From NCBI GenBank assembly GCA_965112735.1, contig OZ218955.1:2480001-2544000 (forward strand): a stretch of 64,000 nt of DNA, written 5' to 3'. The DNA is from Phaeosaccion multiseriatum. Lineage: Eukaryota > Protista > Ochrophyta, other classes. The first letter of the stretch is position 1, and every line of letters starts with the position of its first letter. The notes under the pieces are model-generated. The model made no database searches. It had not been told where the DNA came from and worked only from the letters and a program-made list of their open reading frames with translations. The translations under genes were made by a program, and so were the position numbers. This document shows, one piece after another, positions 7,192 through 63,795 of this stretch.

Positions 7192-9495
7192 CTATGGCGA
7201 CGGCCATGGGGAGTGCGCAGAGGATGAGGTTGAGGAGGACATGGCAGGGTGCTGCCCCAGGATGCTGTTGCTGTTGCCAGCGAGCCACGAAGACACTGCA
7301 GTCCCTGCGTTGGCTCTTTCCCCCGAGCTGAAGCTCGCACTAATGGGGCGGAAAGCCGTCGGAGCGGGCGCGGTACTGAGCAGCAGCCGATTGGAGGAAG
7401 AAGAAGAGCCCCCTCCCAAACGCAGCTGGGCGGCAGCTGACTCTGCTGCTGAAGCCGGGATGGGCGCGACTGGGGGGGGGGTGTGGCGGTGGGGGGGGGC
7501 ATGTTGTCCTGAAGGAGCAGCAGGCCTTTGAGACTAATCACGAGGGCGCTGGTGTTGTCCATGGACCCCTTGCGAATGGCGGAGTGCGTAATGGCCTCTG
7601 CACATGATTTGCAGCCCGTTTGATCGCAGCTTTGGGACACCAGAGTGGCAACATCCTGCGCGGTCACAGGCAAGAGAAGAGAAGGGGTGAAGATTAGGTA
7701 CACGAGAAGGGAGGGAGAGCGTGGGTGTGCGGCGGTGCGGGAGTGCCACCGGCGCTCTGACGGGCCAGCGTGGAGCAGCAGCAGTTGGTGATACAGGAGC
7801 AGTGGCAGTACCTGGTTGGAGAGCACGTCCCAGACGCCGTCCGTGGCCAGCACCAGGTAGTCGTCCCCGCTCTCCAGAGTCTTCATGCGCACGTCTGGCA
7901 CTGCGTCGACCACGCCGTTCATGTTGCGGTCACCGAAGGCCCTACTGACGGCGAGGATGCCGTTCACCCGGGGTATGCCGAAGGAGCACGTTACGCGGCC
8001 GCCCAGCGCGTGGATACGCCGCCGCTCCGACGGCTTGTTGGGCTTGTGGTCCTCACTGAGAGGGACTGCGACCCCGTTGCTCACGAGAACAGCCCTGTGG
8101 AACACAGCACAGTCACAAGAGTGGGTTTCAAAGATAGCGGGGTTTGGCAGTGGGAGTGTACCCAAGCTGACATACCTGCTATCACCAACGTTGGCGACGA
8201 ACAGCCTTCTGCCCCTGATGAACGCCGTAATGGCCGTGCTGCCGTCGTTGGCGTTGAACCGCTCCGCCTTTTTGAGGAACTCTGTGTTTGCTCTGGAGAA
8301 GCCGTTGGTCAATGCCTGGGGCAAGTTGCTTCGGAAGGAATCCTCCCGCAGCACGGCAGGCACCAGAATGTGCGTCAGGGCCTTGCTGCAGCGACCCCCC
8401 GCTGCACGAGCGACAACAAGAGGTGGGCAAGCAAAGGTTAGACAGGCACAGGAGAGATAACAATACATCTATTGATTGACCCCACCACGTACCGTGACCA
8501 TCGAACACCCCAAAGAAGTGTGTCGCTGGGCCCTGCCGCGTGTTGCCGTCAGCAGCACCGGCAGCAGTAGCGGCGGCAGCAGCAGCTGCAGTAGCAGCAG
8601 CGGCGGCGGCGGCGGTGGCGCTGGCCCCCTCGGAAGCCCCCTGCACAAAGTCGGAGTCGCTAATTCTCCGCTGACGGCCGTTGCGGGCGCTCAAGCTCTG
8701 CATGTTTGGCGTGACCTTAAACTCGTCCTCCATATACGGTCTCTTGCCGCGGAGAGTGCTCACCCCGAAAGAGATGCCGCACTTGCCCAGAGCCTCTGCC
8801 TCCGGTGACAAGATTGGTTCTTCCGTTCGTGTTTGGCTGCCGCTGCCTCGTCGAATCACGCTCGCCCAGGCAGACGAGCCTTCCTCGCTTCTGCCACTGC
8901 CACCACTGGTACACGGCGGCTTCCCCATACCCGTCCATCCAGAGGGCTCGGTCAAAAAGGCCCTGTCATCTGCTGCTCCGCCTCCTGAGCTCCGAGCCAT
9001 GCTAATGCTAGTAAAGTTGGAAGGGGTGCGAGACGGGCACGTGGCCAAGCTCTCCAGAGAGACCCGACGCTCGTGCTGCTGCGCAGGCTCTTGATGAGAG
9101 AATCGACGTACATGGCCAAGAGCCTTTAGCGGGCTCACAATCGGGCTTATCCGACCATTGCTGCTTTTCATAACTGAAGCAGGCGTCGCCTCCGTTCGAA
9201 GTCGTCCACTGCTATAAAGAGTGAGTGGCACGCGGCCCCCCTGTTCCTGTTCGTGACCGTACCTGGTCATTTCGGTTGCCGTTACGCCGCTGTGGCGTGC
9301 CCTAGCGCTCCTCCCCCGCTGTTGGTGATGCTTGTGCTGCTGTTGAACGTGTTGGTGGGCTTTCCGTCTTCTAAACAAGAGCAAATCCCCGCCGTTTCCG
9401 ACCTCATCGGCTTCCCTGTACTCCTGTTTCCTTTGTGTAAGAGCCGAAGCAGTTCCCCCGTCGAGCCCGCCCCCGTCCCGCGCAGAGCGACGCAT
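7192..9495 (-). CDS. Protein phosphatase 2C (PPM family) with long disordered N-terminus
   Basis: Motifs RGKRPYMEDE, FFGVFDGHG, DGSTAI, VANVGDSRAVL, LSEDHKP, GILAVSRAFGD, LVLATDGVWDV and GSMDNTS, spread across at least 3 introns. The 3' end is uncertain: a homopolymer indel is likely near 7472-7499, and the literal frame stays open to 6825. Confidence 0.93.
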
Positions 9496-22510: not shown

Positions 22511-25451
22511 TTATCCCTCCCCCTGCTCTTCTCTCCTCCTCTCCTTCTTCCTCTTCTTCTCCTTCTTCCTCTCCTTCCTCTGGCCTTGGGCTTGATTGGG
22601 CTTGCCGAAGCACACTTGCCCCTCCACCTCCGCATCCACTTCGGCGGCTTCAGCTGCCGGCGCTGCCTTCTCTCTCTTCTTCTTGCTGCTGCTGCTGCTG
22701 CTGCTGCTGCTGTGCTTCGTGTCCCGCCACCCTTCCTCCTTGTCCTCCTTCTCTTCACCCTCCTTGTTCTCCTTCTCTTCGCCCTCCTTGTCCTCCTTCT
22801 CTTCACCCACCCTTCGCCGAGGCTGAGCTTCAAACGGACCGCTGTGCTCAAAAAATCCCCCCACCCAGGGCTCAGAGGCTGCTGATACCTCTGAAGACAG
22901 TGCTCCTGTAGCTGCCACTACTGCTGCACCACCTCCTCCTCCTCCTCTTCCTCCCCCTCCTCCTCCTGGTGCGCAATACGACTGGAAGAAACTGGTGCTG
23001 CTGTCCATATGACTACTGCTGCTGCCGTAGCGGCTGCTGTTGCTTCTGCTGCTGCCTGCAGTGTTGGGGGGAGCCACCTTCGGGACGCTCGCTGCGCCCT
23101 CAAAGATGCTGCTCCCACCTCCACCCTCCTGCCGCCGCCGCTTCTGCTGCTGCTGCTGCTGCTGCCGCTGCTGCTGCTGCCGCTGCTGCTGTGCCTGGCC
23201 GGGCCTGTCTAACATACGCAACATGTCCTTGACACTACCGCTGACCCGTGCCGTCTCCTCGGGCCGCTCAAAGCGGTGCCTTAGCTGGAACTTCTCGTGG
23301 CAGTGGCAGGTGCAGAGGGAGCTGAGCGGGATGGGGTGGAAAGAGGAGGCGAGGCAAGGCAAGGCAAGGCAAGGGACGGGAGCTTAGCGGCAATGAACGC
23401 TCCGGGAACGGTTCGACTTTTCTATCTTGTTTGTGCGCACGTGTGTGTGTGTGCGTGTATGTGTGCGTGTGTCTGCATGGGTGAACGTGTGTGTACATGT
23501 GTCCCACCCCCCCCCTCCAACGTACCAACGCGAGCACGTGACGCATTCTCCGTAGGGGTTGTCTTCCTTGCACTGCTCACACTCCGTGCCCCCCGCCCCG
23601 CCCCCGCCCTTGGCCTTAGGCAGGCGCGTGAGTCTCGGAGTTACATGCGTCCTGTGTGTCATTGGGCCTGTCCCGAGGGGGAGTGTCTCTTTGCCGCCCC
23701 CCTCCCCGCCGGGAGCCCCCTCAGACGTGTCCGCAGCAGGCGCCAAGTGAGAGGCAAAGCGCCTGCCCAGGGGTAGAGGGTGGGGCGGTGTGGAAGGAGG
23801 GGGAGTGGCGGTGAGAACAAGAGGTAAGAGAAGGAGGAAGGAAGGGGTGATAACAAGAGGTAAGGAGGAAGGAAGGGGTGATAACAAGAGGTAAGAGAAG
23901 GAGGAAGGAAGGGATGAGAGGCGTGGTGGGGTGGGGCGATGGTGGGGCTGTTAGCAGAGGCTTTTTGTGTGCACAGGCAGGCTCAGTCTGAGTGGGTGGT
24001 TATCAGCGGAACGCACACACACACACGCACGCACGCACACACACAAGGCCGACAGAGAGAACACACAGAGAGCATGTGCCGTGCTGTGCTGTATCACCAA
24101 CTGGTGTGCTGCGCTGCACGAGTGTCCACACATACCCGGCGGCGAAGCACTCGAGGCACGTGTTGAAGTCCTCGTCGAGCAAGTCGTCGCAGCCCATGCA
24201 GTGACGGTACGTGTTGTGCAGCTCCGCCCTGGGCAGGCAGGGAGGGAGGGAGGGAGGGAGGGAGAGGGGGGGTAAAGCAACGGTCAGGGGCAAGCCATCC
24301 ATCCTATCGTGCTTTCCCTCCACTCCAGCGTGTTGTCTCCAGGGGGGCACGCACGCACGCACGCACACGGACACACGCTTACACGCTTGTATCTCACCTG
24401 CAGATGCGGCACTTGAATCCGTCGCCGGAGAAGGGGTTGACTCTCCGCAGATGCGGTGCCACGAGAGTGTCCACCACCGCGTTGCCAACTGTGGCGGCCT
24501 TGCCCGTGTGCCTGCCCTTCTTACCCCGCTTCTTAGCCGCCTGCTGCTGCGCCTTCTCCTCTGCTGTGAGCAACTCAGATGGCAGCTCAGATGACAGCAG
24601 AGGCGCTATGGCTCGAAGCATGCGGCCCATCGCCGGCTCCTTCGCTGCTCTAGGGTCTGTCCCTGCTCCTGCCCCTGCCCCTGCCCCTGTCTGAGGCCCT
24701 GACCATGGCACTGACCCTGACCATGGCACTGCCCCTGACCACCGCGCCGTCGAGTGCTGCTCTGTCTGCTTGCCCGGCCTGACACTGGCACTCTCACCGG
24801 CATCAGCAGCAGTTGGTGATACAGCAACAGCAGCAGCGGGGAGGTCTTGCAGCTCGTCCCCTCCCCGTCCCCAGGCTCCGTGGAAGATGACGCCCCTTGC
24901 CGCTTCCTCCTTGTCGTCCTCAAGCGGACAGCGCGTGCCCCGCATGACTGCTGAGAGCGCCACCCGAGCGGCGTTGTGCACCGCAATCTTGGCCGCTCCG
25001 AGAGATTCCGTGGGCACTGCGCTGCCGCTGTTGAGGGCCTGCCGGTCAAGTGAGGTTGACAGTTCCGCCGTGCCGCCTGCGTACAGGAGGGAGGGGAGGG
25101 GAGGTGGGGGAGAGGAGGAGACAGAGAGATTGGGGACAAGATGGGAGGGAATGGAGGAGGAGGGGGGGGGGGGGGTGATGTGCGTGCGTGGATTGCATGG
25201 CAAGACAGTGAGAGGAAAGGAGTGAGAGGAACAAGGGGCGAGCAATCGAGGCGAGCAAGCGAGGAGAGGAGAAGGGCACCTTGCATCCATCTTCGCTTCT
25301 CTTGGCCCGAGCAGCCGGCAGCCCCATGCAACAGAGAAGGGCCAATCTTCTTCTCCCAATACGACCCTCCCTCCTCCCTCTCCTCTCTCACCTTTGTCGC
25401 TGACCCCTTGGAAGATCCAATCCCACGCAACCGACACGCACACACTTGCAC

Positions 25452-25482
<31 letters not shown>

Positions 25483-25653
25483 TTGCTGCTGCTGCTGTTG
25501 CTGCTGCTGCTGTTGCTGCTGCTGCTGCCAGTGTCTGCCAGCGGCCTTGGGGCCGGAGCGGTGGCCTGTGAGACTGTACCGCTCACCCTTGATCACCACG
25601 ACTTGCTCGGCTTCATCGGTCTCGGTGTGGCCGTCATCGTCATCCTCGCTACC

Positions 25654-25691
<38 letters not shown>

Positions 25692-27254
25692 GGCTGCTAG
25701 TACTATTACTACTGCTACTGCTGCTGCTGTTACTACTGCTACTGCCACCGCCGCCGCCACCACCAGGACCCGCACGGCCACCGGCACGGTTGTTCCAGCT
25801 CCTGCTGCTGCTACCGCTGCTGTTGCTGTCACTACGCTCGGTTCTACTCGTGCCAAGGCGGCCACCCATGCCGTTATCACTACCGCCGCTGAACGGGTCA
25901 GTGTCATCGTCGTCACTCCCTCTGTCGCCGCCACTGCCGCTCTCACCGGCGCTGCTCCCTTCCACCAAGATGACCTCTTTGCCAGCCTTCAAGCCCCTCT
26001 CTAAGTCCCCCCCCTCCAAGGATGGCTCCTCCAAGGAGGGCTCCAATGGCTCCAGGGAGGGGGAGCTGGCTGGGGAGGACGACGTCACGCCTTCCTCAGA
26101 CGTGTCCATCATCTCCGTCTCCGTCAAGGCGCCTTGCCCCTCTTGCCTCTGCGCCCCTTGCTCGCCCTCCCCGCCTCCCCCCTCAAGCTTGGAGTCAACC
26201 TCCCTCTCGCTCTTCGAGTCAGTTTCCTCCCTCCTCGCCTGCATCGTCGTCGCCTCTTCGGCCCTCTCCTCTCCTCTGTCTGGCGCCTCTTGCGCCACGT
26301 GCACATGGGACTTCACCGCTGGTCTCTCTGCCCTGTCTGCTCTCTCTGCCGCATGTGCCGGCACGACTGTCCCGTTTGCTGCACACCCCAGGCCTACGTC
26401 TACGCCACTCCCAATCCCCTCATCTTCCTTGGCACGCACATGCGTAGGCAGTGCTACTGCTGTACCACCAACTGTTGGCAGTGCTACTGCTGCTGCTGCT
26501 ACTGCTGGCCGGCCTCTCTCTCGCGCTGCAGCTGCCTGATCGACAGCCCCGCTCCCCCTTCCGGCTCCCTCCCCTCTCGCTCCTCCTCTCACACCCCTCA
26601 TACTTGCTTCTTCCCCAGCAGTACCAGAGCACTCCCCTTCTCCTTCTTGCCGCCCTTCCTTCGACTCCACCGGCTCCTTCGGCTGCGGTACTCGTGCCGC
26701 TTCGATCTGCACCTCCGGTCCCTGCCCCTGCTGCGTTTCCTCCCTCTGCCTGTGCCCCTCCTGTCCCTGCCCCTTCCTCTTGACGCTGTGGGTGCCACCA
26801 GACGAGGCGGAACGCTCCCCTGGGCTGGTCAGCTTGCGAAAAGCGTGCAGGCGGGCTTTGTTGATGTGAACAAAGTCACCAGGCCTTAGCACGAAGTGGG
26901 AGGGGCTGTAGTGCAGACGCCTCAGTTCCTCCAGCTGTGCCTCCTCGGGCCAGGGCGGCTTGGCCGTGTTGGAGTGAGGCAGGTCGTGGTAAGTTGACTC
27001 AGTCTGCTTGTCGGCCCAAGAGTCCTCAGCATGAGCATCAGCAGTCGCGGTGGCAGAGGAGGCATGCCTTGCTCTCTTCTTCCCTTTCCTCCCTCCCTTC
27101 TGGCGCATCTGCTTCCCCCCCCCCTGCCCCTGACCCTCCTGGCCCTCCTCTCTGCTGCCGCTCTTGTCCTTTCTGTGCAGGATTCTCATGGCGTTTGCAG
27201 TGTTGGGACCGTCAAGCCGCCGCAGCATGATCTGGCCAAGGAGAACAGATGAGA

Positions 27255-27291
<37 letters not shown>

Positions 27292-30200
27292 AATAAGGGC
27301 ATGATTTGGCAACGAATGTGCCTGACCGTGTCCTCTGTGTTTGACCACTTCAATGAAAAGCCTGTGAAGCACTTGCCAAGCCCTTGTCAAGCACACGTAC
27401 CACTTCATTGAAGCCTGTCAAGCAGAGGTGGCCGGAGTCTACCGTGCCGTGCCCGTCTTGGTGGAAGGTGGTGAAGGCCCCGGGGGGCGTGATATACACA
27501 TTGGGCCCCATGAAGGGCCGGCCTTCCACCGGCACGTACTGCAGCGCGCAGTTGGAGCCCGCCGGGAGCAGGTCCAGAGCAGCACCACACGAAAAGCCTC
27601 CTCCTCCTCCTGCTCCTCCTCCTCCTCCTGCTCCTCCTTCTCCTCCTCCTCCTGCTCCTCCTCCTGCTCCTCCTCCCCCCCCTCCTCCTCCCCCTCCCCC
27701 CGTCCCCCTGCTGCTGCCCACTTGCCGCGGAGGGCCCCTCAGCCCCCCAGTGCCGAAGTGGCGCATCAAGTCAGCCAAGAGCTCTGGTAGGTGCCTGCTG
27801 ATGTCCAAGTCTGTAAGATACAGCACCTCGTTCAGTACATCGATGCTCCGCTCCTCGCCATCGTTGTCTGTGACTCTGATCACAGGACGAGCGCCCGGCT
27901 CCCAGTGCTGCCACACATATACAGGGTGGATTGATAGGGGGGGGGGGGATGGCGAGAGAGCAGAGAGAGGGAGAGAGGACGGACAGAAGATGAGCAAGAA
28001 GAAGAGAAAGTAGCAGAGCGCCTCCTTAACACCCACGATACCCATCTACCCCACCCATCCACCCACCTTCACCCACCACACAGACACACACACACAAGGG
28101 CACGAACGACGAGTCTCGGCCCCTCCTGCATACGCACACGCGCGCACACAAACACACGCACACACACATACGCAGGGCACGCACACCCACCTGCAAGATT
28201 GCGCCTCCTCTCCCCCTCCCCCTCCGTGTGTGCGCCCTGCCCTTGCCCCTCCTGGCCCTCGCCTCTGCCGCCTCTGCCTCTGCCGCCACTTTGGAGGCGA
28301 CTTGCCGCTCCTTCCCAATCCTGCTGCTGCTCCTCGTCCCCCCCACCCCGACGTCCGCCGTGTCTGGACGAGGGGAGCACCCCCCCCCCCCACCCCCGGC
28401 CGCAGCCCCCCTAACCGTAGCCGCCGCCGCTGCCCCAGCCCCTGCCCTTGCCCCTCCGCTGCTGCTGCTGCCCTCCCCGGCCGCGCCTCTATCCTCAGCA
28501 GCGAGCGGCTCACAGAAGCCATCTGCGAGCCCCTCTGTGCAACCATCTCCACGCGGAAGAAGCGCGTCAGGCGCAGCGGCAGTTGGTGATACAGTAGCAG
28601 CATCAGCAGCAGCCGGCTCTGTCGGTGGAATAGGCCGTGCTGTTGGAGGGGGCATCGGCGTGGACCCCGCTTCTGCTTGTGCTGGCGCCCCCTCTTTTTC
28701 TCCCAAGCAGAGTCTCACCTTCTTCCGCGGTCCTCTTTCTGCCTCATCCTCGCCACTCCTACCATTGTCATCATCAGCAGGAGCATCACCCTCATCGTCA
28801 TCACCATTCTCCTCGCCGTCCTCCATCCGATTGCCGCCGTCCTTGCGATCCTCCCTCTTGCCGGGAGCGGCATCATCATCACTATCATCACCACCACCTC
28901 CATCACCGCGGCTATGGCTCTCCCCAAAAGCATCCCCCCCCTCATCGTCATGCCCCCCCCCCGCCCCCGCGCCGCTGCTATACAGTGCTGCGCCTCCATC
29001 ATCACCACCACCACCACTTGCGGCGCCTCCTCCTCCTCCTCCTCCTCCTCCTCCTCCTCCTCCTCCTCCTCCTCCTCCTCCTCCTCCTCTCTCGCCGGCA
29101 GGTGCGCGCTGAGGGGCCTCGTGCTGCTCCTCGTCATCGTCCCCAGTCATAGCTCTCCACCCGTCGCACACCTTTTGCACCGCCTCTGTGCTCAAGCGTC
29201 CCTCCCTCCACCGCAGGGCGTACTCGCGACACACCAAGTAACGCGTGTAGGCATCGAAGGCCATGCTCGCCCAGCACTCAGAGGGATCCCCGGACACCTC
29301 CTCGTACAAGGGAGCCCCGTCGATGGAGCAGCGAGACGCGGGACAAAAAGGGGCCAACACTGCTGCGGTATCACCAACTGTTGTCTTTGCTTTGGGTGCG
29401 GCCGGCTGCCCCTCTCTCGCTTTCCGCCCTCCCTCGCCCCCTGAGCTCTCAGCATCCGAAGGCCCCACCGATGACGCGGGAGTTGCTGGCGACGACGCGG
29501 CGACACCCTCCTCGGCACCTCCGGCACCCCCCTGGGCAGAGCTTCCCCCACCCCCACCCCCTCCCCCTCCCCCTGGCTCCAGCCCTGCAGCCTCGCCCCC
29601 CCCTCCCGATGCGCATGCACCTGAGCTCCGCTGCAAGGGAACGGACACTCCTGTGCGTGGAGCTGTGGGTGAGGCTGTGGGTGGGGGTGAGGCGGCTGCT
29701 GTTGGTACGGCTGTTGGTGGTACAGGTACCTTGGCGGCCTTGCGCCGATGAAACACTTTAAAGCTGTGCATCATAACATTGGCCATTCTGCGCTCAGGGG
29801 AGGGGTGGATGGCAGACGATGGCAGGCGATGGGACGGGATGGGATGAGATGGCCAGCGAGGGAGGGGGTTGAGGCTCAAATCCTACGCCTACTCCCTTCT
29901 GTCTTCATAACGATAGGGAAAGAAAGAAACGAATGCTCTACCTATCCACCTATCTACTCCATCCACCAGCGGCACAAGCCCTCAGCCAGTCCAGCCACAC
30001 ATGCACGCACGCACGCACACATACACACACATGCAACACTTGACTTACCTATTGTTGACGTACTCCATGTTCCAGAGGCTGGGGTCTAACCCCGCCCCGA
30101 GGCCCCTCATGATGACCGTTACATCTGGACACTCCATGAGGCGAAGTACAAAGTCGATGTCCTGCTGCTTCACCACGCGCTGCCTCACCACTTGCGCCCC

Positions 30201-33200
30201 CCTCCCATCCTCCTCTCTGCCCTTCCCCCCCATGCCACTGGTCTCCGCTGCTGGATGCGCCTGAGCTCGTATGGAAGGGAAAAAGAGGGGGCGCGGGCAG
30301 AGGGAAGAGCAGGGAAGGGAAGAGAGGAGCAGGCTGAGGCCGATGGACCGCTGGACACCCGTACGCACACAAACACACACATATACACAGATACACACAC
30401 CCACACACACCTACACATCGCACACAAACGCATGTATACACAGATACACCCACGGATACCCCCACACATGTCTACACATACACACACATGCATCGCACCT
30501 CCCAAAAGTCCTTTAGCTCCATATTGAAGCTCATCCCTCTGAAGTTGGCAACGACCACCCCCTCCTCCTCATCCACAGAGAAGGTGTCCGGACTGCAGTC
30601 CTCCGGCACCGGCGGAATGGCCGAGCGCTCCTTCGGGAGGAGGTGCAGCGGAAGGGGGAGGTGCATATCAAGAATGTCCGACACAAGCCCTGCGTCAGGG
30701 TGGCGAGGCGCCTTGCTGCAAAGGGCGGGCAGCGCGGGGGGAGAGCCTTTGGGCCGCTTCTGCTCCTTGCTCTTCTTGCGCTGCTGCTCCTGCTGCTTCC
30801 GCCGCTCCTGCTGGATGCGATCGAGCTTGGCCTGCACCTTGATGAGTTTCTGTTGCTGCTCCTGCTGCTGCTTCTGCTGCTGCTTCTGCTGTTGGCGATA
30901 GACCTTGTCATTCTCCTTGACCTCTTCCACCAGGCGCTCACGAGACGCTTGAGCCGCACTAAGCTGGCGCCGAAGCTGCGCCACCATGCTGTCACTACGG
31001 CTCTTACTGCTACCGCTGCTTCTCTTCTTGCTGCCGCTGCTGCTCTTACTGCAGCTGCTCCTGCGCTCGTGATGATTCGAGCCTGGAACATGCCGGCGCT
31101 TGCCGCCACTCGTGTGAGCGCTCGGACTCAAATTGCTGACGTCTCTCTTCCTCTTTACCCCTGCCCCTCGCTCTGCTCCAGCGGGAGGGGCAGCCCCCTT
31201 CCCTTTGGCCTTGACCCTTTCTACCGCCGACCCACTCCATACCGGAGGAGGGGCGAAAGACGTCCCCGGCCGGGCACCCCTCTCTAGGGGGGCCTTGGAC
31301 CCGGCGACTGCGTGGTGGTGCACAAGCCTCGGGTTTCTGTCGTCCTGCTGCGCCTTGCTGACTGTTCTTACCCTCTTGCCCTCCACAATGTTCTTGGTGT
31401 CAAGGTTCCCCTCAATGAGGCTCTGAGGGGGCGGTGACGTCGTGGACACCTTCCAGAAGCGTGGCTCCCCCTTGCTGCGCTCGGACTGAGAGAGGGAACG
31501 CGGCACGGAGGACGAACTGAACGCTCCGGCTGCTGCTGCCGCTGCCGCTGCTGCTGCTGCTGCGACGGCTGCTATTGCTGTTTCCTTTTCCTTTTCCTCA
31601 GCCAGCCCTTCGGCCTTGAGAGTCTTTCTCGGCACCCTCTTGGTGTGGATAAGGTGCGCGACATTGATGTCTGCCGCCACAGGGTCAAGCCGAGTGCCGG
31701 ACTCCCCCCCTGCTGGTGCGTCTGCTCCTCCTCTTCCTGCAGCAGCTGCTGCTGCTGCTGCTCCTCCTCCTGGTTCCCCTGCTCCTCCTCTTGATCCTTC
31801 CTCTCCTCCTGCTCCTCCTCCTCCTCCTCCTCCTCCTCCTCCTCCTCCTCCTCCTCCTCCTCCCCTTCCAGGGCGGGTCACCTTGGCCCCGGCCTTCACC
31901 GCGACAGCTTCTTCTCCTCTCTCTCCTTCCCGTCCACCCTTTGAATGCGAGCGGCTTCTTCCGCCTCCTTTCCGCCCTTTCTCATGCGCACGCCCCCTCT
32001 TGGGCGCCGCAGTAGTGGCCACTGCGCCCAGTGTCCTATCCGCCCCCCCACTCACCCCCCCCGTCCCCAGCACGTCGTCCTCCACAGCCTTGGCCCCGAC
32101 CTTCGCGGGTGTGCGCCCTGTCTTGCGGGAGATGGAGATGGCACCCTCCACTGCACTGACACTCGAACTGTCAATGTCCGGCAAGTTCTCGAGGGTCTTG
32201 GTGGCCGGCCTGCGCTCTCTTTTGGTGGAGAGAACGTTCCTGGCGGTGAGGTCGGCATTCACCGATTGCGGTGCGTCCCGAGGAAGGCTGCTCTGTTTGG
32301 GCTTGCCCTTCTTAGAGGAGTGAGAGCGTGAGGAGGAGCGAGAGGAGGGGTGAGAGCGAGCGCCGTGTCCATGTATACGCTTGGGCTGCGGCGGGACTTG
32401 CTCTTGCTCTTGCCCCTGCTCTCGCTCTTGCCCCTGCTTCTGCTTATGCTCCTGCTCTTGCCCCTGCTTCTGCTTATGCTCCTGCTCTTGCCCCCGCTCT
32501 TGCTCTTGCCTCTCCCCTTGCTTTTGTTCCTGCTCTTGCTTTTGCTCTTTCTCTTGTTCCTGCTCTTGCTTTTGCTCTTTCTCCTGTTCCTGCTCTTGCT
32601 TTTGCTCTTTCTCTTCTTCCTGCTCTTGCTTTTGCTCTTTCTCTTGCTCCTGCTCTTGCCCCTGCTCTTGCCCCTGCTCTTTCTCTTGCCCCTCCTCTCG
32701 CTCGTGCCCCTGGTGCTGCTCTTCCATTTGCTTCTGCTGCTGCTCTTGCTCCTGCTGCTGCTGCTGCTCTTGCTCTCGCCCCTGCTCTTGCTGCTGCTGC
32801 TCTTGCCCCTGCTCTTGCCCCTGCTCTTGCCCCTGCTCTTGCCCGAGCTCATCAAGTGCAGGTCTTACCGAGGCCCCATTTTCGCCGCATTCCTCCCCAG
32901 CAGGCGCCTCACCAGCTCCAGCACTCGCGAGAGCTGTGCTGCAGGCGACACGGCCACCACCAGGACGGCTGCCATCGGCCACGGTAGAGCCGGAGGTGGA
33001 AGCAACAGGGGCCAGCGATTGCGGATCCAAGTCTGTGAGCTCAAAGCCATCCGCTGCAAGAGCGGCGTGGCCAAGGCCAAGAGGGGACGTGTTGCCTGCG
33101 TCCGCTTGAAAGAAACTTTGAAACTCGTTCGAAGGAAGACCTTCGTCACCACCACCCTCCTCAGCAGCAGCAGCAGCAGCTGGCTTCTCAATCCTACAGC

Positions 33201-33510
33201 TTCCGGCCGCGACAGCCGGGAGATGGGCAGGACGCTCGCCCGGGGCTGTACCCTCACCCGGGGCCCCACCTGCACTGCTGTGTTGTGGAAGTGGAGGCGT
33301 CCCTTCCACAGAACGGTGCAGGGCAGTTTCTGTTGCTGATGCTGCTTCTTGTGCGCCGCTCATCGGTGTGGACATGTGGCCATGGCCGGCACCCAAAGGG
33401 GTCGGAGGAGGCCGGGCCCGGTCTGTTCCTGCGAGATTCTCCGCCGCGAAGGAAGACGGGGAAGTACGTGCAGGAGGACGCTTCCTTATCTTCTTCGGCT
33501 CCATGGTCAT
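22511..33510 (-). CDS. Very large JmjC-domain protein (putative histone demethylase) with C-terminal Cys/His zinc-binding region
   Basis: JmjC motifs FMGPNVYITPPGAFTTFHQDGHGTVDSGH (HxD), FVLRPGDFVHINKARLHAF (distal His) and CVSVAWDW. Downstream lie FKCRICR|AELHNTYRHCMGC...CLEC and CEQC...CVTC...CTCHCH. The exons are long and low-complexity (Q/E, G, S), and some boundaries are approximate. Confidence 0.8.
32395..32845 (-). repeat. Q/E-rich coding minisatellite (EQGQEQ/EQKQEQ)
   Basis: Tandem ctgctcttgccc-type units within the first exon of the JmjC gene. Confidence 0.9.
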
Positions 33511-55255: not shown

Positions 55256-55589
55256 GCTCTGGTGCTCGGTGCACTGTGGATAATATTCTTTCTTCTTGTC
55301 CTTCTGTGTGAATCCTGTGTGGGCGCGCGCCTAAACGTAAAGTTTCAGTTTCTGCATGTCCGCCGAAACGTTAGGGGCACTCACGATCTCTAATTGGGTG
55401 TATGCGCAAAACCCGGATTTTGGAATTTGGAGCGAGTTTTTCGGGCCAAATCGGGTGATTTCGTGTTGTTTTCGGGGGGCCGGAGCGAGGCACGCAGCAA
55501 GAACAGGGGGGGGGGGAGGGGGGGTTGATAAGTAGGCAGACTGGATGGATGAGGAGGGGGGTGCTGCCTACCTACTTACCGTCTGCGCA

Positions 55590-58500
55590 TTAACCCTGCA
55601 GTGGGTGCTCCCTGGCACGGCGGCCTCCTGGGGATGGTTGTGTGGTCTTAGCACGAGGAGAATCGAAATTCTCCTTGTGCTCGTAAAGTGCGCAAGCCAA
55701 GATGGCTCGCGCTGCGGAGGCGTCGCGGTGCTGGTAGCCATTGCACTCGGTGCAGTGGACGATTTTCACGGGGCCGACGTTGCTCAGGATGGCTGAGCAG
55801 GCGGGGACGCAGCATGATGAGGTGGTGTAGCTCTCGTCCTGCCCCAGAAGTACCATCGGGCGCGTGGTTGCCTGTCCCCAGGCGGAGCGGTTGGTGTTGG
55901 CCTGCGGTGGTGGCGGCGGGCGGTGTTGGGTACAGGAGCGGCCAGGCAAGCAAGGGCAAAAGACAGTTGGTGTGGTTGGTTGCTTGTGGGCTGGAGGAGG
56001 AGCAAGGAGTGAGGCAGGCAGGAGCGAGAAGCAATGGCTGGCTGGCCTGAGCCGAGCTGAGGAGTGGCTGAAGCAAGAGCAAGACAAGGGAGCTAGCAGC
56101 TACTCGCAGCTCACCTGCTTGAGGCTCTGCCGCAGCTCGCCCATGCGCAGCATGCTGCGGTAGGGGTTGGTGTTCTTGCCCCTCTTGATGCGGAGCTCCA
56201 CCTCCCCGAGAATAGCCGTGTCAAAGAGGCAGCGCAAGGCCCTCTTGGCGACGTGATTCGCCCGCTTCGAGTTGTGGCGGATGCAACGCCATCGCTCGCG
56301 AATGGCGCGTCGATAGAGGTTCCGCAACTCCTGGTTCTCTGCGGCTTCACCATCCTTCCCCGGTGGGGCGTTGACGTCCATGCTGGACTGCAATCGACGC
56401 TGCTGGTGCGCCTGGCTCGTGAGGGATCGGGCCGCCCACCCTTGGCCGAGGTACCAGTAGCTTTCCCGAGCAGGGTCACAGGCCACCAGCATGGTGTTGA
56501 ACCCGGGATCGAGGGCCCCGACGTAGGCCTGCGTTTTCTCCTTCGTACCGAACAGCTTCTTCCACTTTTTTGCCGGAACACCCTTGCCAAGAGCGTTGCT
56601 ACGACCACCACCCGGGGTAGTGGGGCCCACCACGCGGATGAAATCGCCCATCCGTGAGAACGTCTTGGCCACACTCTCTGCACCCGCGCGCTCGATGCCC
56701 CCCACCCCCATGGCACCCCTGCTTAGATGCCCCTCCCCGTCCTTTGCCGCCACCTGGGAAAAGCGCACCTCCTGCCCTTTGCGCCACTTTCTCCACTCCC
56801 TCCCTCGCCGCCAAACCAGCGACTCCGTCATTTGCAGGGAGCGGAAAACTCGCTGGTCCACTACCCGCTTCACCTCGTCGCCCCCCCTCCCGCAGAGGAG
56901 AATGCACTGCCCGAAGACGGCCACCACGCCCTCCTGAATTTGGCCTGGCAGATCATCCCGCCACCTCTGTTTCCACCCCGTCTCGTCCCCCTCGCCATCA
57001 TCTTCGAGCAGCTTGTTCAACTTCTTGAACCTCTCGTTGCCCCAAGAACCCCCCTCCCCCAGCCAAGAGGCCATGGTGGTGACGGCCTGCTGCGGCTCCG
57101 GCTGCTGCTCCTCCCCCCCCTTCTTCTCCTCGTAGCCCTCATTCTCCTCCTGCTGTCGCCGCTGCTCCTGCGATTCCCGATTCTCCTCTCCATCATCCTG
57201 CCCGTACACGTGCCTCCTCAGCTTGGTGAGGTGACGACTGACCAGAGCTTCATAGAGCCGCTCCAACTGGACCCGGCGCTCGGGCCCGACGTTCTTTGGA
57301 ATGGAATCGAGGCGCTTCCACAGGTTGTCCGCCAGCATCGCCGCCTGCTTCCTGAGCTTGGCACTCTCTTTGTTGGTCCTCCCTTTCCATCCCTTGTCTC
57401 CGGTCGGCTCCTCTCGTTTCTCCAGTCCCTCTACATAAACCCCCCTCCCCTCTGGACCTTGTACGTTCGAAATCTCGAAGGACAAGGACGCCATGAGGGG
57501 CATTCCTGCTGCTCCTGGCGGGGCAGCAGAATCCTCCCCCCGCCGCTCCTCTCCTTGTACTGCTCCTGGCGGGGCAGCAGAATCCTCCCCCCGCCGCTCC
57601 TCTCCTTGTACTGCTCCTGGCGGGGCAGCAGATTCCTCCCCCCGCCGCTCCTCTCCTTGTACTGCTCCTGGCGGGGCAGCAGAATCCCCCCCCCGCCGCT
57701 CCTCTCGTTCCTTCAGCCTCTCCAAATACTCCAGCACATCCACCTCCCTGGGCGTCTTGAGGGTGAGCGTGGACAAGGACATGAACTCGTCAGCCTCCAC
57801 AAACACCTCCACCGGGGGCGTCAGCGTTAACTTGGTTCTTGTTTCTCTGCCATCTCTCTTTCCTCTCTTCAGCACTCCCACCACCACATCCACCTCATGA
57901 ATACGAAGCAGCAGTCGATCCTGCGTTCGATTCTTCACGAGCCAAGGGTACTTCCCTTCGCCCGATTTGACAGCCTCAAACGACTCCCACGATGCGTCCC
58001 CTCCCCCCCCCCGTGGCACAAGGCGTCGCTGGCCGGCGAAGCCCTTGATCTGCTGCTTGGGCACGGGAAGAGACAACGTCTGGAGACGGAAATTGTTCGC
58101 TCGATCTGTCGCCTCCGCCACGAGTCTGGCCCTGTTGGCCTTGGCCTGCTGCCCGAGCGTCAGGCTCTTGAATGCGGCAGGTATTTTGCTACTCAAATGC
58201 AGTCGTTGCAGGCCAGGAGTGGTGGTAGTTGGTGGGTCGAATCGACCTTTACCAGATGTGCCGACGGTGAAGTAGAGGGGAGCTGCCCACTCGAGGCCGA
58301 GCTCCTTCTTCGACTGGCTCTCGAGACGCACGGCTCCTGTGTTTCAGAGCAAAAGGGGGGGGGGGTTAGTCACGCTCAATGTGAAAGAAAAAAAATAGAT
58401 AAGGAGGGGATGCCATGCTCACTCACCCGATCTCCATTTGGCCGCGGGGCTCCCCTCGCCTTGCGTGTTCGTCGTCTCGTCGTCAGTCTCATCGTCTGAG

Positions 58501-61500
58501 CTCGTCGCCCCCCTGCTCGTGTCATAGTCGTCCTCGTTCATGAACCGAGACGGGGTACGCGCCCTAGAGGATGTGCGGAGTTCGACCGGAGGGTTCGCAC
58601 TAGATAAGCTTGTGCCGGGGGGCGCAGGTGCCTCTCCGCTAGGGGAGCTGCCCCTCTGTTGGTTCGCCATCTCCGACTCCACCGCCATGGCAAGCTGCTG
58701 TGCTACGTCCCGCATTTGCTTCACCTCTGCCGCACCGTCCTTTTTGCGTATAATCATGTCCGGCAGAAGGCGAAACAGTACGTTGGCCAGCCCCTCCTCT
58801 CGCTCGCCGCTGGCGTCCACATCCGTGCCGCCGAAGACATGCGATCGCCCCCGCCACATCCCCTCCCTCTCCAGTTCGGGACTCACAATGTCAGAGGGCC
58901 ATTCGTATTCGAGAAGGTCACGTCGCTCCTCAGCCGCCCCCCAACCTCTGGCCCCTGCTCTCTCCGCGTCGTCTGTCTCCAGCTTCCCCTGCGTTGTATT
59001 GCGCGTCACCAGCACGCAGGCCCTCTGCCCGGGTTTCAAGACGCGGCCCCCCAAGTCGGTGGGCTGGGTTGGAACGAGCTCCCAGTCTACCACGGCGTGA
59101 AGACGATTCGTCTTGCCCTTCTTCTCTTCGCCCTCTCCTTCTTCCTCTGATTGCGGGCCCTCTTTGCTCGCCTTCTTGTCGTCGTTCGGGCCTCCGTGAG
59201 TGCTTTGTTGCAAGGCCACTGCAGCTGCAGCTGCATCGGTCCTCGCCGTCTTCCCGCCGCCCCCGTCGAGGTGGATGGCCAACAAGCGTCTATGGACTTC
59301 CTCCTTCATATACGGCGTCCAAGCCTTGACGCCCTGGAGTTGGCAGAAGGCCCCCCAAGCCTCTTCCAACTCCACCTCCTTCCTGTTTTTCTCTGGCGCA
59401 GCAGGAGCAGGAGCAGCAGTTGGTGCTACGGCAGCAGAGGCCCCCCCCACAGCAGCAGCAGCGGCAGCAGTTGGTGCTCCGGTAACAGAGGCCCCACCAG
59501 GAGGGCTTCCAGCATCTCCAGCAGCAGTTGGTGCTACGGCAGCAGAGGCCTCCTCCACAGCAGCAGGAGCGGTAGCAGTAGCAGTTGGTGCTACGGCAGC
59601 AGAGGCCCCCCCCACAGCAGCAGCAGAGGCCCCACCAGGAGGGCTTACAGCAGCTGGTGCTGCAGTAACAGAGCCCTCCTCCTCCGCAGCTCCAGCAGCG
59701 TTCGTCTCGCCCATGCCCATGATACGCGTGGCATCCCGGAGCAGACGAGCGACATTCACCCTTCCTTGACTCGCGGCCAGCAATAGCGTGGCGGCGTTGC
59801 AAAACTCAAGAAAGAGTGACCGAAAGACCGAGGGCAGCAGGTCTTTCACCGATTGTTCTTCCTCCTCCTCCTCCTCCTCCTCCTTCTCCTCCTTCTCCTC
59901 CTCCTTCTCCTCCTTCCTCTCCTCCTCCTTCTTCTCCTCCTTCTCCTCCTCCTCCTCCTCCTCCTCCTCCTCTCCCACAGAACGACGCTGGTACTGTCGA
60001 AGGATGCCGACTTGCCGTGTCGACAATACAATCTCCCGGGCCCCCCGTTGCTCTTGGAGCTCCTCGTCCGCGTCTGTCTCCATTCCGCCTGACATTGCCT
60101 CCGTGATGTAGGCGAAAGCACGGAGTGAGCCGACGCCCGCGACTTTAGCCGAGTGCTGGCGCCCAAGGGTTCTGGCCACGAAGGGGAAAAGCTCCTTTAC
60201 GATGAACTCCATACCTGCCTCGGCCTCAAAGCGGGCGTCGGCCAGCTTTGAGGAGTAGCGAATGACGGCCTCCTCGGTTCTCTGCTGCGTGTCTGAGCCG
60301 GGATTGGGCTTCAGCCTGACGGCCCTCGAACTGTACGGTTGTCCCGCACGAGACTTCTTGGCGTTCCTTCTGTTCCATGTGGCCGTTGCGGTGCTCTTAG
60401 CACCCATCCTTGAGTCCTCTATCCTCTTTGCCTCCTTGCCCCCTTCCTCCGCCGCTTCCTCCGCCGCTTCCTCTGGCTCTTCCGCTTCCTCCGCCGCTTC
60501 CTCCGCCGCTTCCTCTGCTCCTTCCCGGGATCCATCGCCAAGGGGCTGATAGGGGTTGTCATTTGTGATACCCCTATCTGCAACACCTCTCTGATCAGCT
60601 TCAGCCTTAGCTTCTGACCACAGAGCCGGGAAACTTGGAGTACGAGGAGGCGGCTGCTGCCCTTCGGGCAGCAGCGCGCCCATGCTGCGCCCCTTGGGCT
60701 TGCGCCGTAGCTTGCCGAACGGCACCAGCTCCACTACTGAAGTAGGCTCCAGACGCCTGAGACGCAGACTCCATGGGCGCGACTGCTTGCCTTCCTCCCC
60801 CTTAACCCTACGCTTCAAGTCTGTAAGCAGTTGTCGTCTTGCTGTTTCGTCCAGTCCACTGGCCGTCGCCAAATCTTTGATGACGACACCAGTATCCTCC
60901 TCCCCCCCCTTGACGCGAGGCAACATGATGCTCCAATCCCTCTTGTTCGCCAATCGCCTCTGGTCCCTCGTCCTTCTTCGGGCGGCGTCAAAGCTGGTGG
61001 CAGGTAGGTCAGCCTGTTCACATCGCAACTGAGCGGAAGGCCGCGCCCAAGCTTTTGACCCCGAAAAGTCAACGAATCGGGTGGCCAAGGACGCTAAATG
61101 CTCTCGCCGGACCCACTCCTTGCATTCACCCACGGGGTAGAATTTGGGCTCATCCTTCTCCTGGAGAGACAAGCAAGGGGAGCTGAGTGAGAACATTGAC
61201 ATGGGAGAGCGAGGGTAAAGAACGATCATGTCTGACTCACTGACTCACTGACTATCTCACCTTGATGCTCGTCTTGTCGCCCTCGCCCATCATCGCCACA
61301 TTGAATCTGACGCCCTCCTTCTTGGTGGTCCTCTTGACCAACACCAGGCGGCCAGTCCCCGTGGCCGTGAAATTCCGCTGGTAGTTGTCAGAATTCCCCC
61401 CCTCGTCCCGGCAGGCGCCGACCTTCGCGCCTCGGATGACGGCTTTCCCAAGGCCTCGAATGTGGCCGGCCGCGTCATAGTTATCCATGCCCGTGATCTT

Positions 61501-61583
61501 GGCCGTGGAATGAGGCTTCGACTCCGTTTCCCCTTCCCTCTGGCACCTGATCACCTTGATCACCTCCGACGCCGCCGGGGCAG

Positions 61584-61638
<55 letters not shown>

Positions 61639-63795
61639 CCCCTCAGCAGCATGGTCGGAGAAGAAGAATTTCGTAAGGTGGTGGAAGCGGAGGGCGGGGG
61701 TTTCGCCCTTGTCGAGGAAGAAGCAAACCGCGATTTCCACTCTCTCGTCTCCACCCCACTCCCCTGGGCGGCGGAGGGCTTTGAACTTCTGGAACCTGTC
61801 GAAGCGCGACACCAGCTGAGGCAAAGGGAATCAAGAACAAGCAACAGTGGTTGGGTGAGTGAGTGGTTCAGTCCATCAGGAAGGAAGGCAGGAAGGGAGG
61901 AAGGAGGGAAGGAGGGAGAGGGAGGGAGAGGGATGCAAGGAAGGAAGGAGGGAGGGGAGGAAGGAAGGGAGGAAGGAGGGAAGGAAGGGAGAGGGAGGGG
62001 AGGAAGGAAAGCGGTCCAGCCTGGACTCACCTGGAGGATCCATGGCACGAGAGCACGAGTCCGACTATGCAGGTCGTCTAATTCCGTGGCCACCTTGACG
62101 AACTTGGTACGGTCACACTGATAGCTTGGGCCTCCCTGCGTCCTCCTCTGCTTCCTCCTCTTCGCCTTTTCCCCACCTCTCCTGCTGCGAGCCTTCTTCG
62201 CGTCGTCGGATGTTGCTGTGACGGACGGTAGCATACCCTCAGGAACTTGCCGAAGCGCGTCTTTCACAGTCACTGGGCGCTCAGTATTACTGTGGCGAAC
62301 CACTCCACTCCATGCCGGAGCGGAGAGAAACGAAGGCTTAGGGTCGGCACGGTCGAGGGCTCTGTCCATGTCGTCTTCGAATTTGACTGGATTTCCCAGA
62401 ACTGTGTTCTCGGTGGGGGCGGCAGAAGCGGGCCACCCCGTCTCCTTCCCGTCGCCTGCCGTCGCCGCGTCCAGATCGTTGATAGCTTCGATAAGAAGCT
62501 GCCTGTGGTGTTGCCGCGTTGCCGCGATTTGCAGTGCGCGGTAGCAGACCCCCTCGCAGGGGAGGGACCCTTGGCTTCGCTGTCTTACTTGGTCCGTGTC
62601 GATGGCCTCCTGCCACGCGTAGAAGTACGTAGATGGGTGGTCTACTGGAAGCACAAGGGTCGGTGTGGACCCGTTCTTGCCGAAGAACTCTTCTGGCCAG
62701 CCATGCTGTGTTATCAGCGTGGCCAACAAGTCTCGCTTCTTGGTGGTGTACTTCTCCTTCCAGTCTCCTCCTCGATTAAGACTGGCTGCAGTCGTCCCCG
62801 TCAACATTCTCGAGGCGACCCCGCCCAGTGTCACGACAGCGTTCGGCGCTCTGCCTACCCCCTTCAGCCACACATGGGCCAAGAAGCCCAGAATTCCTGC
62901 CCGAGCTCGGAGCCACTCCGCTGTTCGGCACCGCTCAGCCGTGCCGAGGGAGGCTTGAGCGGCAGCTTGCCTGCAGCGACACAACTTGCCCATCACATGG
63001 GGGTCGGATAAGACAGCTGGGCAGACGGGGATACTGTCCAGATTGACAAAGATGACCTTGCTGTCGTCGTGCCTGCCCTCATTGACCTCAAACTCAACGC
63101 GGTTCGCCTGTTGGCTGTACAGGCAGCATACGTCCCCCGCGCTGCCGATGGAATAGCTGGCTCTCTTCGGCGATTTGGCGGTCCCGCTGTCGTCGGTTTC
63201 AATGCGTAAGGCCGGGCACTGGCCAATTCTCCACACCACCACCCGCTCCTTGTTGCTCCTGGCCAATCGCATCGCTGCCAGGAGCTCCTCCTTCCAGGGG
63301 AAGTCAGTCCCCTTTCCAAGCACCAAGCTCTCAAAAGCCGCCAGCATGTCTTCGGGGGTGTCATCCTCATTCTCGCGAAGAGAGAGTAATGCCGCGTTGA
63401 TGTCCCGGGCACGGTGCTGGCCGTTCGGCACCTTGTTGACGTCCAAGTTGTCCTTGCCCAAAAAAAAGGCTTTGGCCGTCTTGGACTGCTCGACGCCTTT
63501 CTCGCTCAGCTCGAAAGGCGTCGAGCGGGTCTTTTGACCATCTTGACCGGACTGTCGAGGAGCGTTGCAGGGCCCTTCTTCTTTCTCATTCCGACACCAC
63601 GCTTTACACGTGTATGTCTGTTGTCGGGAGGGCAAGAGGGAGGGAGGTCAGAGTCAGTTGCTGGGGGGCGCGTAGCTAGCTCATGGGGGGAGAGGCAACA
63701 TCATACCCCCTCTCGTCTCTTCCCTTACCTTTGGGCCTGCTGCCTTCCTCGCTGGGGCTGCCTTTCTCGATGCTCCACCTCCTCCGCTGCTCTGC
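55590..63795 (-). CDS. Giant multi-exon Fanzor/TnpB-family RuvC nuclease (at least 2,470 aa) with N-terminal UDG-like domain; 5' end probably outside window
   Basis: Exons 63617-62031, 61815-61261, 61160-58427, 58336-56115 and 55901-55590 join through canonical GT-AG introns into 7,410 nt in frame, and a further in-frame exon ends at 63729. C-terminal motifs: RuvC-I VGALDPGFNT, RuvC-II GQDESYTTSS, Zn finger CCVPAC...CTEC and RuvC-III HRDASAARAI. Confidence 0.85.
57510..57706 (-). repeat. 51-bp tandem coding repeat (~4 copies; EERRGEDSAAPPGAVQG) inside the Fanzor-like gene
   Basis: tgctcctggcggggcagcagaatcc... starts at 57510, 57561, 57612 and 57663. Confidence 0.95.

Follow-up and report, generated by a model that had tools for sequence, protein, structure and literature searches.

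The window that was analysed, a stretch of 64,000 nucleotides, contains on its minus strand six predicted exons of a gene (63794 to 55590), which are separated by five GT-AG introns and join in phase. The features of the gene model are as follows.

63729..63794, minus strand: short internal exon of 22 codons in phase 0, with donor GTAAGG at 63728
62031..63617, minus strand: exon B, 529 codons of open frame
61261..61815, minus strand: exon C, 185 codons, poly-Ala rich, with GT-AG ends and in-phase joins
58427..61160, minus strand: exon D, 911 codons + 1 nt, including extended low-complexity tracts rich in Glu, Ala and Pro
56115..58336, minus strand: exon E, 740 codons, the last ~140 forming the RuvC-I half of the nuclease
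55590..55901, minus strand: exon F, 103 codons + stop, with the relocated RuvC-II glutamate, the C4 zinc finger and RuvC-III
63618-63728, 61816-62030, 61161-61260, 58337-58426 and 55902-56114, minus strand: introns, with donor GT[A/G]AG and acceptor CAG in all five
55902..56114, minus strand: the last of these, inside the RuvC domain, 213 nt, with donor CAG/GTGAGC

The original prediction had proposed five phase-matched GT-AG introns and a single ORF of at least 2,470 codons; in agreement, the spliced frame runs for 2,491 codons without a stop before ending in a TAA (55592-55590, minus strand), a length that is a lower bound as the 5' part of the gene lies outside the window. The proposed sixth exon ending at 63729 is also present, with its start at 63794 rather than at 63795, the acceptor AG occupying 63796-63795 and being preceded by a pyrimidine tract. 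The intron 5' of this exon contains (CA)n and leads out of the window. Contigs from four public DNA runs of one sample match the stretch without differences, introns included. Codon-position GC (0.64/0.50/0.69) is coding-like over nearly the full length of the frame, with uniform, host-like periodicity, and we estimate that a 740-codon open frame would arise by chance with a probability of ~1e-11 at the local base composition. The frame opens 3-28 codons ahead of the acceptor in four of the five cases (66 codons ahead for exon F) and meets a stop 2-4 codons past the donor at three of the four donors checked; the frame of exon B stays open across its intron.

To identify the product of the 3' end, a Fanzor profile of 507 positions was built from 29 giant-virus Fanzors. 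HMMER aligned it to the joined sequence as one colinear domain (HMM positions 313-500, E 2.4e-10):

55695..56537, minus strand: Fanzor-homologous region, residues 2248-2457, the span including the intron

The hhalign comparison of the joined sequence with the same profile returned a probability of 96.8% (E 2.6e-10), and the TnpB/Fanzor relationship that had been put forward was thereby recovered by both methods. The profile score of 32.4 bits compares with at most 4.0 bits in 2,000 shuffles, and the nuclease module was the sole match to the profile among 776 six-frame fragments of the window (exon F, E 5.7e-7). Taken separately, the tail of exon E occupies profile columns 314-433 (hhalign P 1.6e-4; 5.5 bits in HMMER, equalled by 5 of 5,000 shuffles) and exon F the adjacent columns 450-507. 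As the two pieces match adjacent, colinear halves of the profile, the intron divides one RuvC domain, just as had been proposed. Alternative in-frame acceptors for this intron lie at 55983 and 55872, and all three choices retain the RuvC motifs with similar Fanzor-profile scores; read-through is impossible because of an in-frame stop at 56100-56102.

Public libraries are concordant on the zinc-finger/RuvC-III part: exon F matches Pfam PF07282 (E 1.1e-5; 25.9 bits, 0.4 bits short of the gathering cut-off of 26.3), NCBIfam guided_TnpB (E 2.7e-4) together with IS607_TnpB, and PHROG 506 (E 3.6e-5). Its best PDB match is ApmFz2 (9b0l), and the top three PDB matches all point to the TnpB superfamily. 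No relative of exon E was found in 1.84 billion representative proteins; its ESM-Atlas features resemble OrfB_IS605 clusters. Profile comparison shows that a nuclease module of Fanzor type, within the TnpB superfamily, is encoded at the gene's 3' end. Its predicted active-site and zinc-binding features are listed below.

56508..56510, minus strand: RuvC-I aspartate D2257 (ALDPG), placed by the viral Fanzor alignment in its invariant D-P-G columns
56205..56207, minus strand: canonical RuvC-II position, occupied by G2358 (AILGEVEL), opposite the Pro of 'tillPefet' in viral Fanzors
55833..55835, minus strand: relocated RuvC-II glutamate E2411 (QDESYTT), aligned to ApmFz2 Glu467
55743..55814, minus strand: C4 zinc finger (CCVPAC...CTEC) with C2418/C2419, C2423, C2438 and C2441, a Pfam Cas12f1-like_TNB match
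55722..55724, minus strand: RuvC-III aspartate D2448 (HRDASAARAI), aligned to ApmFz2 Asp501 and the invariant R-D columns

The four motifs from which the nuclease was originally recognized (ALDPG, QDESYTTSSC, CCVPAC...CTEC and HRDASAARAI) are all found in the translation at the codons given for them. Fanzors characteristically lack the canonical RuvC-II glutamate and carry an alternative one ~45-50 residues downstream, beside the zinc finger (PMC10530073, PMC11832414), the canonical position being occupied by Pro or Gly (PMC10530073). The same rearrangement is seen here, with G2358 in the conserved-Pro column and E2411, 53 residues further on, in the column of Glu467, so that the suggested relocation of the glutamate holds. 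In ApmFz2, Glu467 and Asp501 are catalytic-triad residues in the structure (PMC11832414), and the former was selected for mutagenesis as E467A (PMC10530073). The Bao-Jurka motif, D-X(125,275)-[TS][TS]-X-X-[C4 zinc finger]-X(5,50)-RD (PMC3627910), is satisfied as a regular expression, with D2257, 156 residues to T2414-T2415, the four Cys, a gap of 5 residues and R2447-D2448. Each of the four invariant Cys columns is filled, the first pair being CX3-4C instead of CX2C. Leaving aside the motif by which the viral sequences were retrieved, the module keeps 12 of the 17 highly conserved columns, among them D-P-G, the four Cys, R-D and A-R-x-I. D2257, E2411 and D2448 each occupy an invariant column of the 29-member viral alignment, and the D-E-D triad that they form is therefore, on alignment, intact and colinear with the Fanzor family.

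These data bear directly on whether the motifs might be a chance resemblance within a GC-rich open frame, a reading to which the individually weak public-library matches (E 1e-5 to 3e-4) and the absence of a database match for exon E alone could be thought to lend some credit. Against it stand the margin over the shuffled sequences, the colinearity of the match over both exons and the agreement of Pfam, NCBIfam and PHROGs, as independent libraries, and of the first three PDB matches on the superfamily. We consider chance resemblance vanishingly improbable, and effectively refuted by the profile scores, the shuffles, the two-exon colinearity and the conserved columns.

A domesticated or decaying relic is a further alternative, in which the motifs would be kept and the nuclease lost, the module serving, for example, only as the tail by which a large host protein binds DNA or RNA. 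Several observations would suit it: the gene has no paralogue within the 64-kb window, its codon usage is host-like, neither TIRs or non-trivial repeats in 48-64 kb of the window nor a TSD were found to mark transposon ends, the WED/REC half is not detected by profile, and several conserved columns are altered (H to N, N to A and G to S, with the conserved Asn of RuvC-III, A-R-N-I, replaced by Ala). However, the three catalytic residues and the four zinc ligands have all been kept in a frame that is intact over 7.5 kb, which would be unexpected without selection on the active site, and we judge a relic distinctly improbable.

The 3' flank, where an RNA partner or an element end might lie, contains one feature of this kind.

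55527..55580, minus strand: perfect 15-bp hairpin with a 24-nt loop, beginning 12 nt past the stop codon

The hairpin has an MFE of -21.3 kcal/mol (z -4.0), a stability that none of 200 shuffles reached, and could be an RNA or an element-end signal. Structure over the entire 3' region (55256-55600) is not unusual (z -1.1), Rfam gave no match and no omegaRNA was found at the locus; the next gene begins just 336 nt downstream.

Of the characterized systems, the closest is ApmFz2, the mimivirus Fanzor2 (protein L79), in which Glu467 and Asp501 correspond to E2411 and D2448. In both proteins the canonical RuvC-II glutamate is lost and a C4 zinc finger separates the relocated Glu from RuvC-III. Their spacings are similar too: from D to E and from E to D, the module measures 154 and 37 residues, against 143 and 34 in ApmFz2. 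Among the viral relatives, those with the highest scores, L055 and L110, match ApmFz2 at ~1e-26 and not SpuFz1, which is also absent from the PDB matches of exon F. The nearest detectable relatives, from the PDB and viral-Fanzor comparisons, thus appear to be ApmFz2-like (Fanzor2-type) giant-virus proteins, consistent with the affinity originally assigned. Identity is nevertheless low (26-32 bits with the family profile). The first Cys pair has the spacing CX3-4C, and the N-terminal half has no detectable similarity. ApmFz2 comprises 520 residues, lacks introns and has an NLS tail of ~50 residues, in contrast to the at least 2,491 codons and at least five introns of the present gene. The Fanzor1 genes of the GC-rich green alga Chlamydomonas reinhardtii (CRe-1/2/3, CrFNuc) also contain introns, with 5-10 exons, and are Helitron2-borne (PMC3627910, PMC10530073). 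They are of type Fanzor1c, ordinary in size and multicopy, and they have defined Helitron ends as well as a 3'-UTR RNA, whereas the gene described here has a Fanzor2-type affinity, a frame several times longer and no element ends that could be found. Prokaryotic TnpB with a rearranged catalytic site (TnpB2/pro-Fanzor) and canonical TnpB/Cas12f share the RuvC-zinc ribbon-RuvC order of the module. When 33 phage-borne canonical TnpBs are used as a profile, only the zinc-finger/RuvC-III stretch of the module aligns (6.7 bits), and TnpBs, at ~400 residues and with neither introns nor a long extension, are unlike the frame at this locus.

Published Fanzors reach only ~800 residues (PMC10711439), and the frame is therefore several times oversized, in line with the three- to fivefold excess originally claimed. 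The same size limit favors the alternative that the product is an ordinary Fanzor of ~510-880 residues, made from an internal promoter and ATG, the long upstream frame belonging to another isoform or a separate upstream product. Candidate starts include M1610 in exon D and M1833, M1926 and M1981 in exon E, which give typical Fanzor lengths, and an E-rich, linker-like tract (2027-2058) precedes the part that greedy hhalign aligns with the viral Fanzor N-terminus. Set against this, the first 184 codons of exon E are open, coding-like and free of ATG, and the distance from the opening of the frame to a consensus acceptor is a mere 3 codons, so that at least some upstream exon must be spliced onto exon E; furthermore, the gaps between exons (90-215 nt) leave no room for a terminator and a promoter. 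Exon C likewise lacks an ATG over codons 1-109, and the in-frame ATG at 61229 falls within the intron upstream of exon D. We consider an ordinary-sized product unlikely, and from the ORF and splice-site logic we infer instead that a protein of at least 2,491 residues ends in the nuclease module.

The ~2,200 residues upstream of the module have no detectable relatives, and their sole signal is a sub-threshold, UDG-like one in exon B. No domain was recognized in exon D, and none was assigned to the N-terminal two thirds of exon E, which include four in-frame 51-nt tandem repeats (57458-57709). With Pfam UDG, exon B scores below threshold, reaching 15.2 bits where the cut-off is 24.3 (E 0.023), and only the C-terminal half is covered. 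Taking G-x-x-P after strand 1 as motif A and H-P-S as motif B of the UDG superfamily, two stretches of exon B are comparable.

63213-63242, minus strand: motif-A-like VVVWRIGQCP
62631-62651, minus strand: motif-B-like LPVDHPS

All 100 ESM-Atlas feature matches of exon B are UDG-like, at 0.84, which we treat as a lead only, and neither a homologue nor a PDB match was found for this exon. Exon B may possibly hold a UDG-superfamily domain. In the TnpB superfamily, the guide RNA and the heteroduplex are gripped by N-terminal WED and REC domains. Here this WED/REC half was not detectable by profile: the HMM gave no match upstream of residue 2248, and the hhalign score of residues 2040-2245 was no better than that of shuffles. 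Language-model features gave weak leads to TnpB N-terminal families (0.84-0.87). Two AlphaFold (AF2) models, the second of exon B, had pLDDT values of 37 and 38, too low for structural reading. The fullest form of the long-protein reading, in which translation of the entire frame yields a single protein exceeding 2,500 residues, with a working Fanzor2-type nuclease naturally fused to other DNA-directed enzymatic domains including a UDG fold, is one we hold as tentative and rather unlikely.

Taken as a whole, the locus is probably best explained by a Fanzor-type module that ends a giant gene and protein and would carry out guide-RNA-dependent DNA cutting. In this long, intron-rich minus-strand gene the tail of exon E encodes RuvC-I (D2257), and exon F, beyond the 213-nt spliceosomal intron, supplies E2411, the C4 zinc finger and RuvC-III (D2448); upstream of the module, the protein would be composed largely of low-complexity sequence that has no counterpart elsewhere, and may include a UDG-fold domain. 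On the model of characterized Fanzors, the module may bind a guide (omega) RNA, produced from the 3' end of the locus or close to it, and the D-E-D site of the module may cut matching DNA; the long N-terminal part could add nuclear import and possibly other DNA-directed activities.

To our knowledge, Fanzors are the only eukaryotic RNA-guided DNA nucleases, and those described are compact, at ~400-800 residues. Here, a Fanzor module with a predicted intact active site, very distant in sequence from anything in public protein collections, forms the terminal exons of a frame several times the usual size. If the long product is real, a much larger protein would have recruited an RNA-guided module for targeting or cleavage, possibly alongside a uracil-DNA-glycosylase-like domain, which would widen the range of OMEGA architectures and point to natural counterparts of engineered nuclease-enzyme fusions; were the fusion reading true, a family of natural RNA-guided multi-enzyme DNA-modifying proteins would exist in a eukaryote. 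If the long product is not real, the gene would still represent a new lineage, Fanzor2-like and very divergent, that has spliceosomal introns, and the locus shows how intron-split RuvC domains evade ORF-based searches.

The gene lies on the minus strand and was modeled as six exons from its splice signals, a short first exon followed by exons B to F.

63729–63794, minus strand: first exon in the window
62031–63617, minus strand: exon B
61261–61815, minus strand: exon C
58427–61160, minus strand: exon D
56115–58336, minus strand: exon E
55590–55901, minus strand: exon F

All five introns begin with GT[A/G]AG and end with CAG, and the joined exons form a single frame of 2,491 open codons (the frame in which residues are numbered here) closed by a TAA at 55592–55590, in agreement with the original prediction of a spliced ORF of at least 2,470 codons. 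The exon boundaries proposed there also stood, except for the 5′ limit at 63795: the acceptor AG occupies 63796–63795, so the first exon begins at 63794. The gene extends 5′ past the window edge, and the sequence from 63861 to that edge (64000), within the expected next upstream intron, is a long (TG)n/(CA)n microsatellite. In four of five cases the frame opens 3 to 28 codons upstream of the acceptor (66 codons for exon F), and a stop follows 2 to 4 codons past three of the four donors checked, the frame of exon B staying open through its intron. GC content by codon position (0.64/0.50/0.69) is coding-like over nearly the full length and similar to that of other genes in the window. The window also contains an ordinary PP2C protein phosphatase gene (6828–8468, minus strand; Pfam E = 2.5e-42), useful as a host codon-usage reference, and three very long minus-strand ORFs at 24394–33510 (1,004, 617 and 1,012 aa; no Pfam match), which may be another giant gene without recognizable domains. 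The predicted exon structure rests on sequence logic, which is considered sound.

Contigs from four public runs (one sample) reproduce 55450–61400 with zero differences. Coverage is even across the introns and no splice joints occur, and the runs are therefore DNA; no RNA run was among those listed. Within them, the word depth of a 334-nt contig (56109–56442) is roughly double that of the adjoining contigs, and additional contigs, 95–99% alike, cover 55450–56840, with a single contig over each of 56843–57041 and 57838–59031. The doubled depth and extra contigs could represent a second haplotype or a 5′-truncated paralogue that shares the nuclease end.

For comparison with known Fanzors, giant-virus loci were taken from IMG/VR by searching for DNA that could encode E-x-Y-T-S-K-T-C-G, a Fanzor motif, with a degenerate pattern. 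The pattern returned 80 loci, 45 with complete Fanzor ORFs of 360–681 aa, and some viral contigs carried multiple copies (four loci on one of 344,691 bp, three on one of 368,683 bp). The three viral Fanzors checked matched ApmFz2, the mimivirus Fanzor2 (E = 1e-26, 1e-26 and 4e-12), and left the Fanzor1 SpuFz1 unmatched. A profile HMM of 29 representatives (381–681 aa) of the complete ORFs aligned positions 313–500 of its 507 with residues 2248–2457 as a single domain (26 bits; E = 2.4e-10, computed for the spliced protein as one pre-specified target). The last 291 residues scored 32.4 bits, against a shuffle maximum of 4.0 (n = 2,000), and when 776 six-frame fragments from the window were searched, exon F was the sole match (E = 5.7e-7). 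The RuvC-I half alone (residues 2236–2388) reached 5.5 bits at the right profile positions, a score equalled by 5 of 5,000 shuffles. In hhalign comparisons, the exon E tail by itself matched columns 314–433 (P = 1.6e-4), exon F by itself columns 450–507 (4.3e-7) and the two joined columns 314–507 (probability 96.8%, E = 2.6e-10). These separate and joined matches show that each of the two exons supplies half of a single RuvC domain, the halves being adjacent and colinear. Two alternative in-frame acceptors exist for the last intron, at 55983 and 55872; their Fanzor-profile scores are equivalent, so a split domain follows whichever of the junctions is used. Both the predicted Fanzor identity and the predicted division of the RuvC domain by an intron are thus supported.

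Alignment with ApmFz2 places E2411 on Glu467 and D2448 on Asp501, which in the ApmFz2 structure form the catalytic triad together with Asp324 (PMC11832414); the mutants D324A and E467A were made to probe that triad (PMC10530073). Fanzors typically have their RuvC-II glutamate relocated, and in ApmFz2 this residue is Glu467 (PMC11832414). The canonical RuvC-II position is G2358, within AILGEVEL and 53 residues N-terminal to E2411, and is Pro in the viral Fanzors. This arrangement fits the published rule that Fanzors have Pro or Gly at the canonical position and the glutamate instead about 45–50 residues downstream (PMC10530073, PMC11832414). The spliced protein keeps 12 of the 17 columns that are at least 85% conserved in viral Fanzors (the motif used to fetch them being excluded): the RuvC-I D-P-G, the lid-region Arg, the RuvC-III R-D and A-R-x-I, and three zinc cysteines, the fourth, inside the fetch motif, being likewise present. 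Its departures are a first cysteine pair of CX3–4C rather than CX2C, Ala for the conserved RuvC-III Asn, and Ser for the Gly after the second Cys. The Bao–Jurka motif, D-X(125,275)-[TS][TS]-X-X-C4-X(5,50)-RD (PMC3627910), is also satisfied. On the kept columns, the RuvC-II rule and this motif, the earlier claim of an intact triad (D2257, E2411 and D2448) is justified at the sequence level, and the module may be an active nuclease.

In public libraries exon F (103 aa) has matches to Pfam Cas12f1-like_TNB (E = 1.1e-5; 25.9 bits, just under the cut-off of 26.3), NCBIfam guided_TnpB (E = 2.7e-4) and IS607_TnpB (E = 5e-3), and PHROG 506 ‘transposase’ (E = 3.6e-5); its top three PDB matches are ApmFz2 (9b0l), LaTranC and a Cas12m. 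The RuvC-I region of exon E, short pieces included, had no match in Pfam, NCBIfam or PHROGs, and phmmer against the PDB returned nothing relevant for it. Exon E gave low-complexity matches only among 1.84 billion representative proteins, and word-indexed protein searches with two of its regions and with exon B gave zero matches. Pieces of exons E and F found no close-relative loci in viral and metagenome contigs, and tblastn found none in plasmids; a phage TnpB profile was too distant to be useful. A language-model feature search with exon E pointed to OrfB_IS605 clusters (0.92–0.94), which we treat as a lead only. AlphaFold2 was run on single sequences because there were no homologues for alignment, and gave unusable models (pLDDT 36.8 for exon E and 38.5 for residues 57–406 of exon B).

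A Fanzor WED/REC half was not detected: the viral Fanzor HMM gave zero matches upstream of residue 2248, residues 2040–2245 scored no better than shuffles in hhalign, and the feature search gave weak leads to TnpB N-terminal families. As the N-terminal halves of Fanzors are highly variable (PMC3627910), this non-detection was not counted as a negative. Two WED/REC candidates picked by eye (FRLQTLSLPVPKQQ, around residue 1730; PEPQQ...W.G...N, around 2061) were dropped for want of statistical support. Protein homology searches detected no relatives for the upstream 2,200 residues (exons B, C and D plus the greater part of exon E), where Ala, Glu and Pro tracts are abundant. Two features stand out in this part.

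57458–57709, in frame in exon E: four tandem 51-nt units (repeat search)
62631–63242, minus strand, exon B: possible UDG-superfamily domain

The units are 97–100% identical except for the first, encode 17-residue repeats RRGE[D/E]SAAPPGAVQGEE, and look like a recent in-frame expansion within coding sequence. For the UDG signal, the sole domain lead in this part, exon B has a sub-threshold Pfam match (E = 0.023), UDG-like proteins as 100 of 100 feature-search neighbors (at 0.84), a motif-A-like VVVWRIGQCP (non-canonical, GQCP) and a motif-B-like LPVDHPS (HPS); the chances of a UDG fold here are about even. A literature search found no published description of natural Fanzor fusions to other enzymes.

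The 3′ flank contains one local structure.

55527–55580, minus strand: hairpin with a perfect 15-bp stem and a 24-nt loop

It begins 12 nt past the stop codon (z = −4.0); its 5′ arm opens with GGTAAGT, resembling a consensus donor, and a C-rich tract comes next (about 55500–55520). No omegaRNA was recognized here; the 3′ region overall is not unusually structured (z = −1.1), and the next same-strand gene starts 336 nt downstream. Rfam gave zero matches over 52–64 kb, a repeat search of 48–64 kb returned low-complexity families only, with no TIRs, and the window contains neither TSDs nor a paralogue of the gene.

Intron-containing, Helitron2-associated Fanzors are already known from green algae (PMC3627910, PMC10530073), and the relocated glutamate is likewise an already known feature of the family. 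Fanzors described so far reach about 800 residues (PMC10711439). Here, exon C has no ATG in its first 109 codons and exon E none in its first 184; as exon E is coding-like through those 184 codons yet cannot initiate translation there, it must be joined to one or more upstream exons. A shorter isoform may be translated from an internal ATG (M1610 or later). Read through as a whole, the frame would specify one giant single protein.
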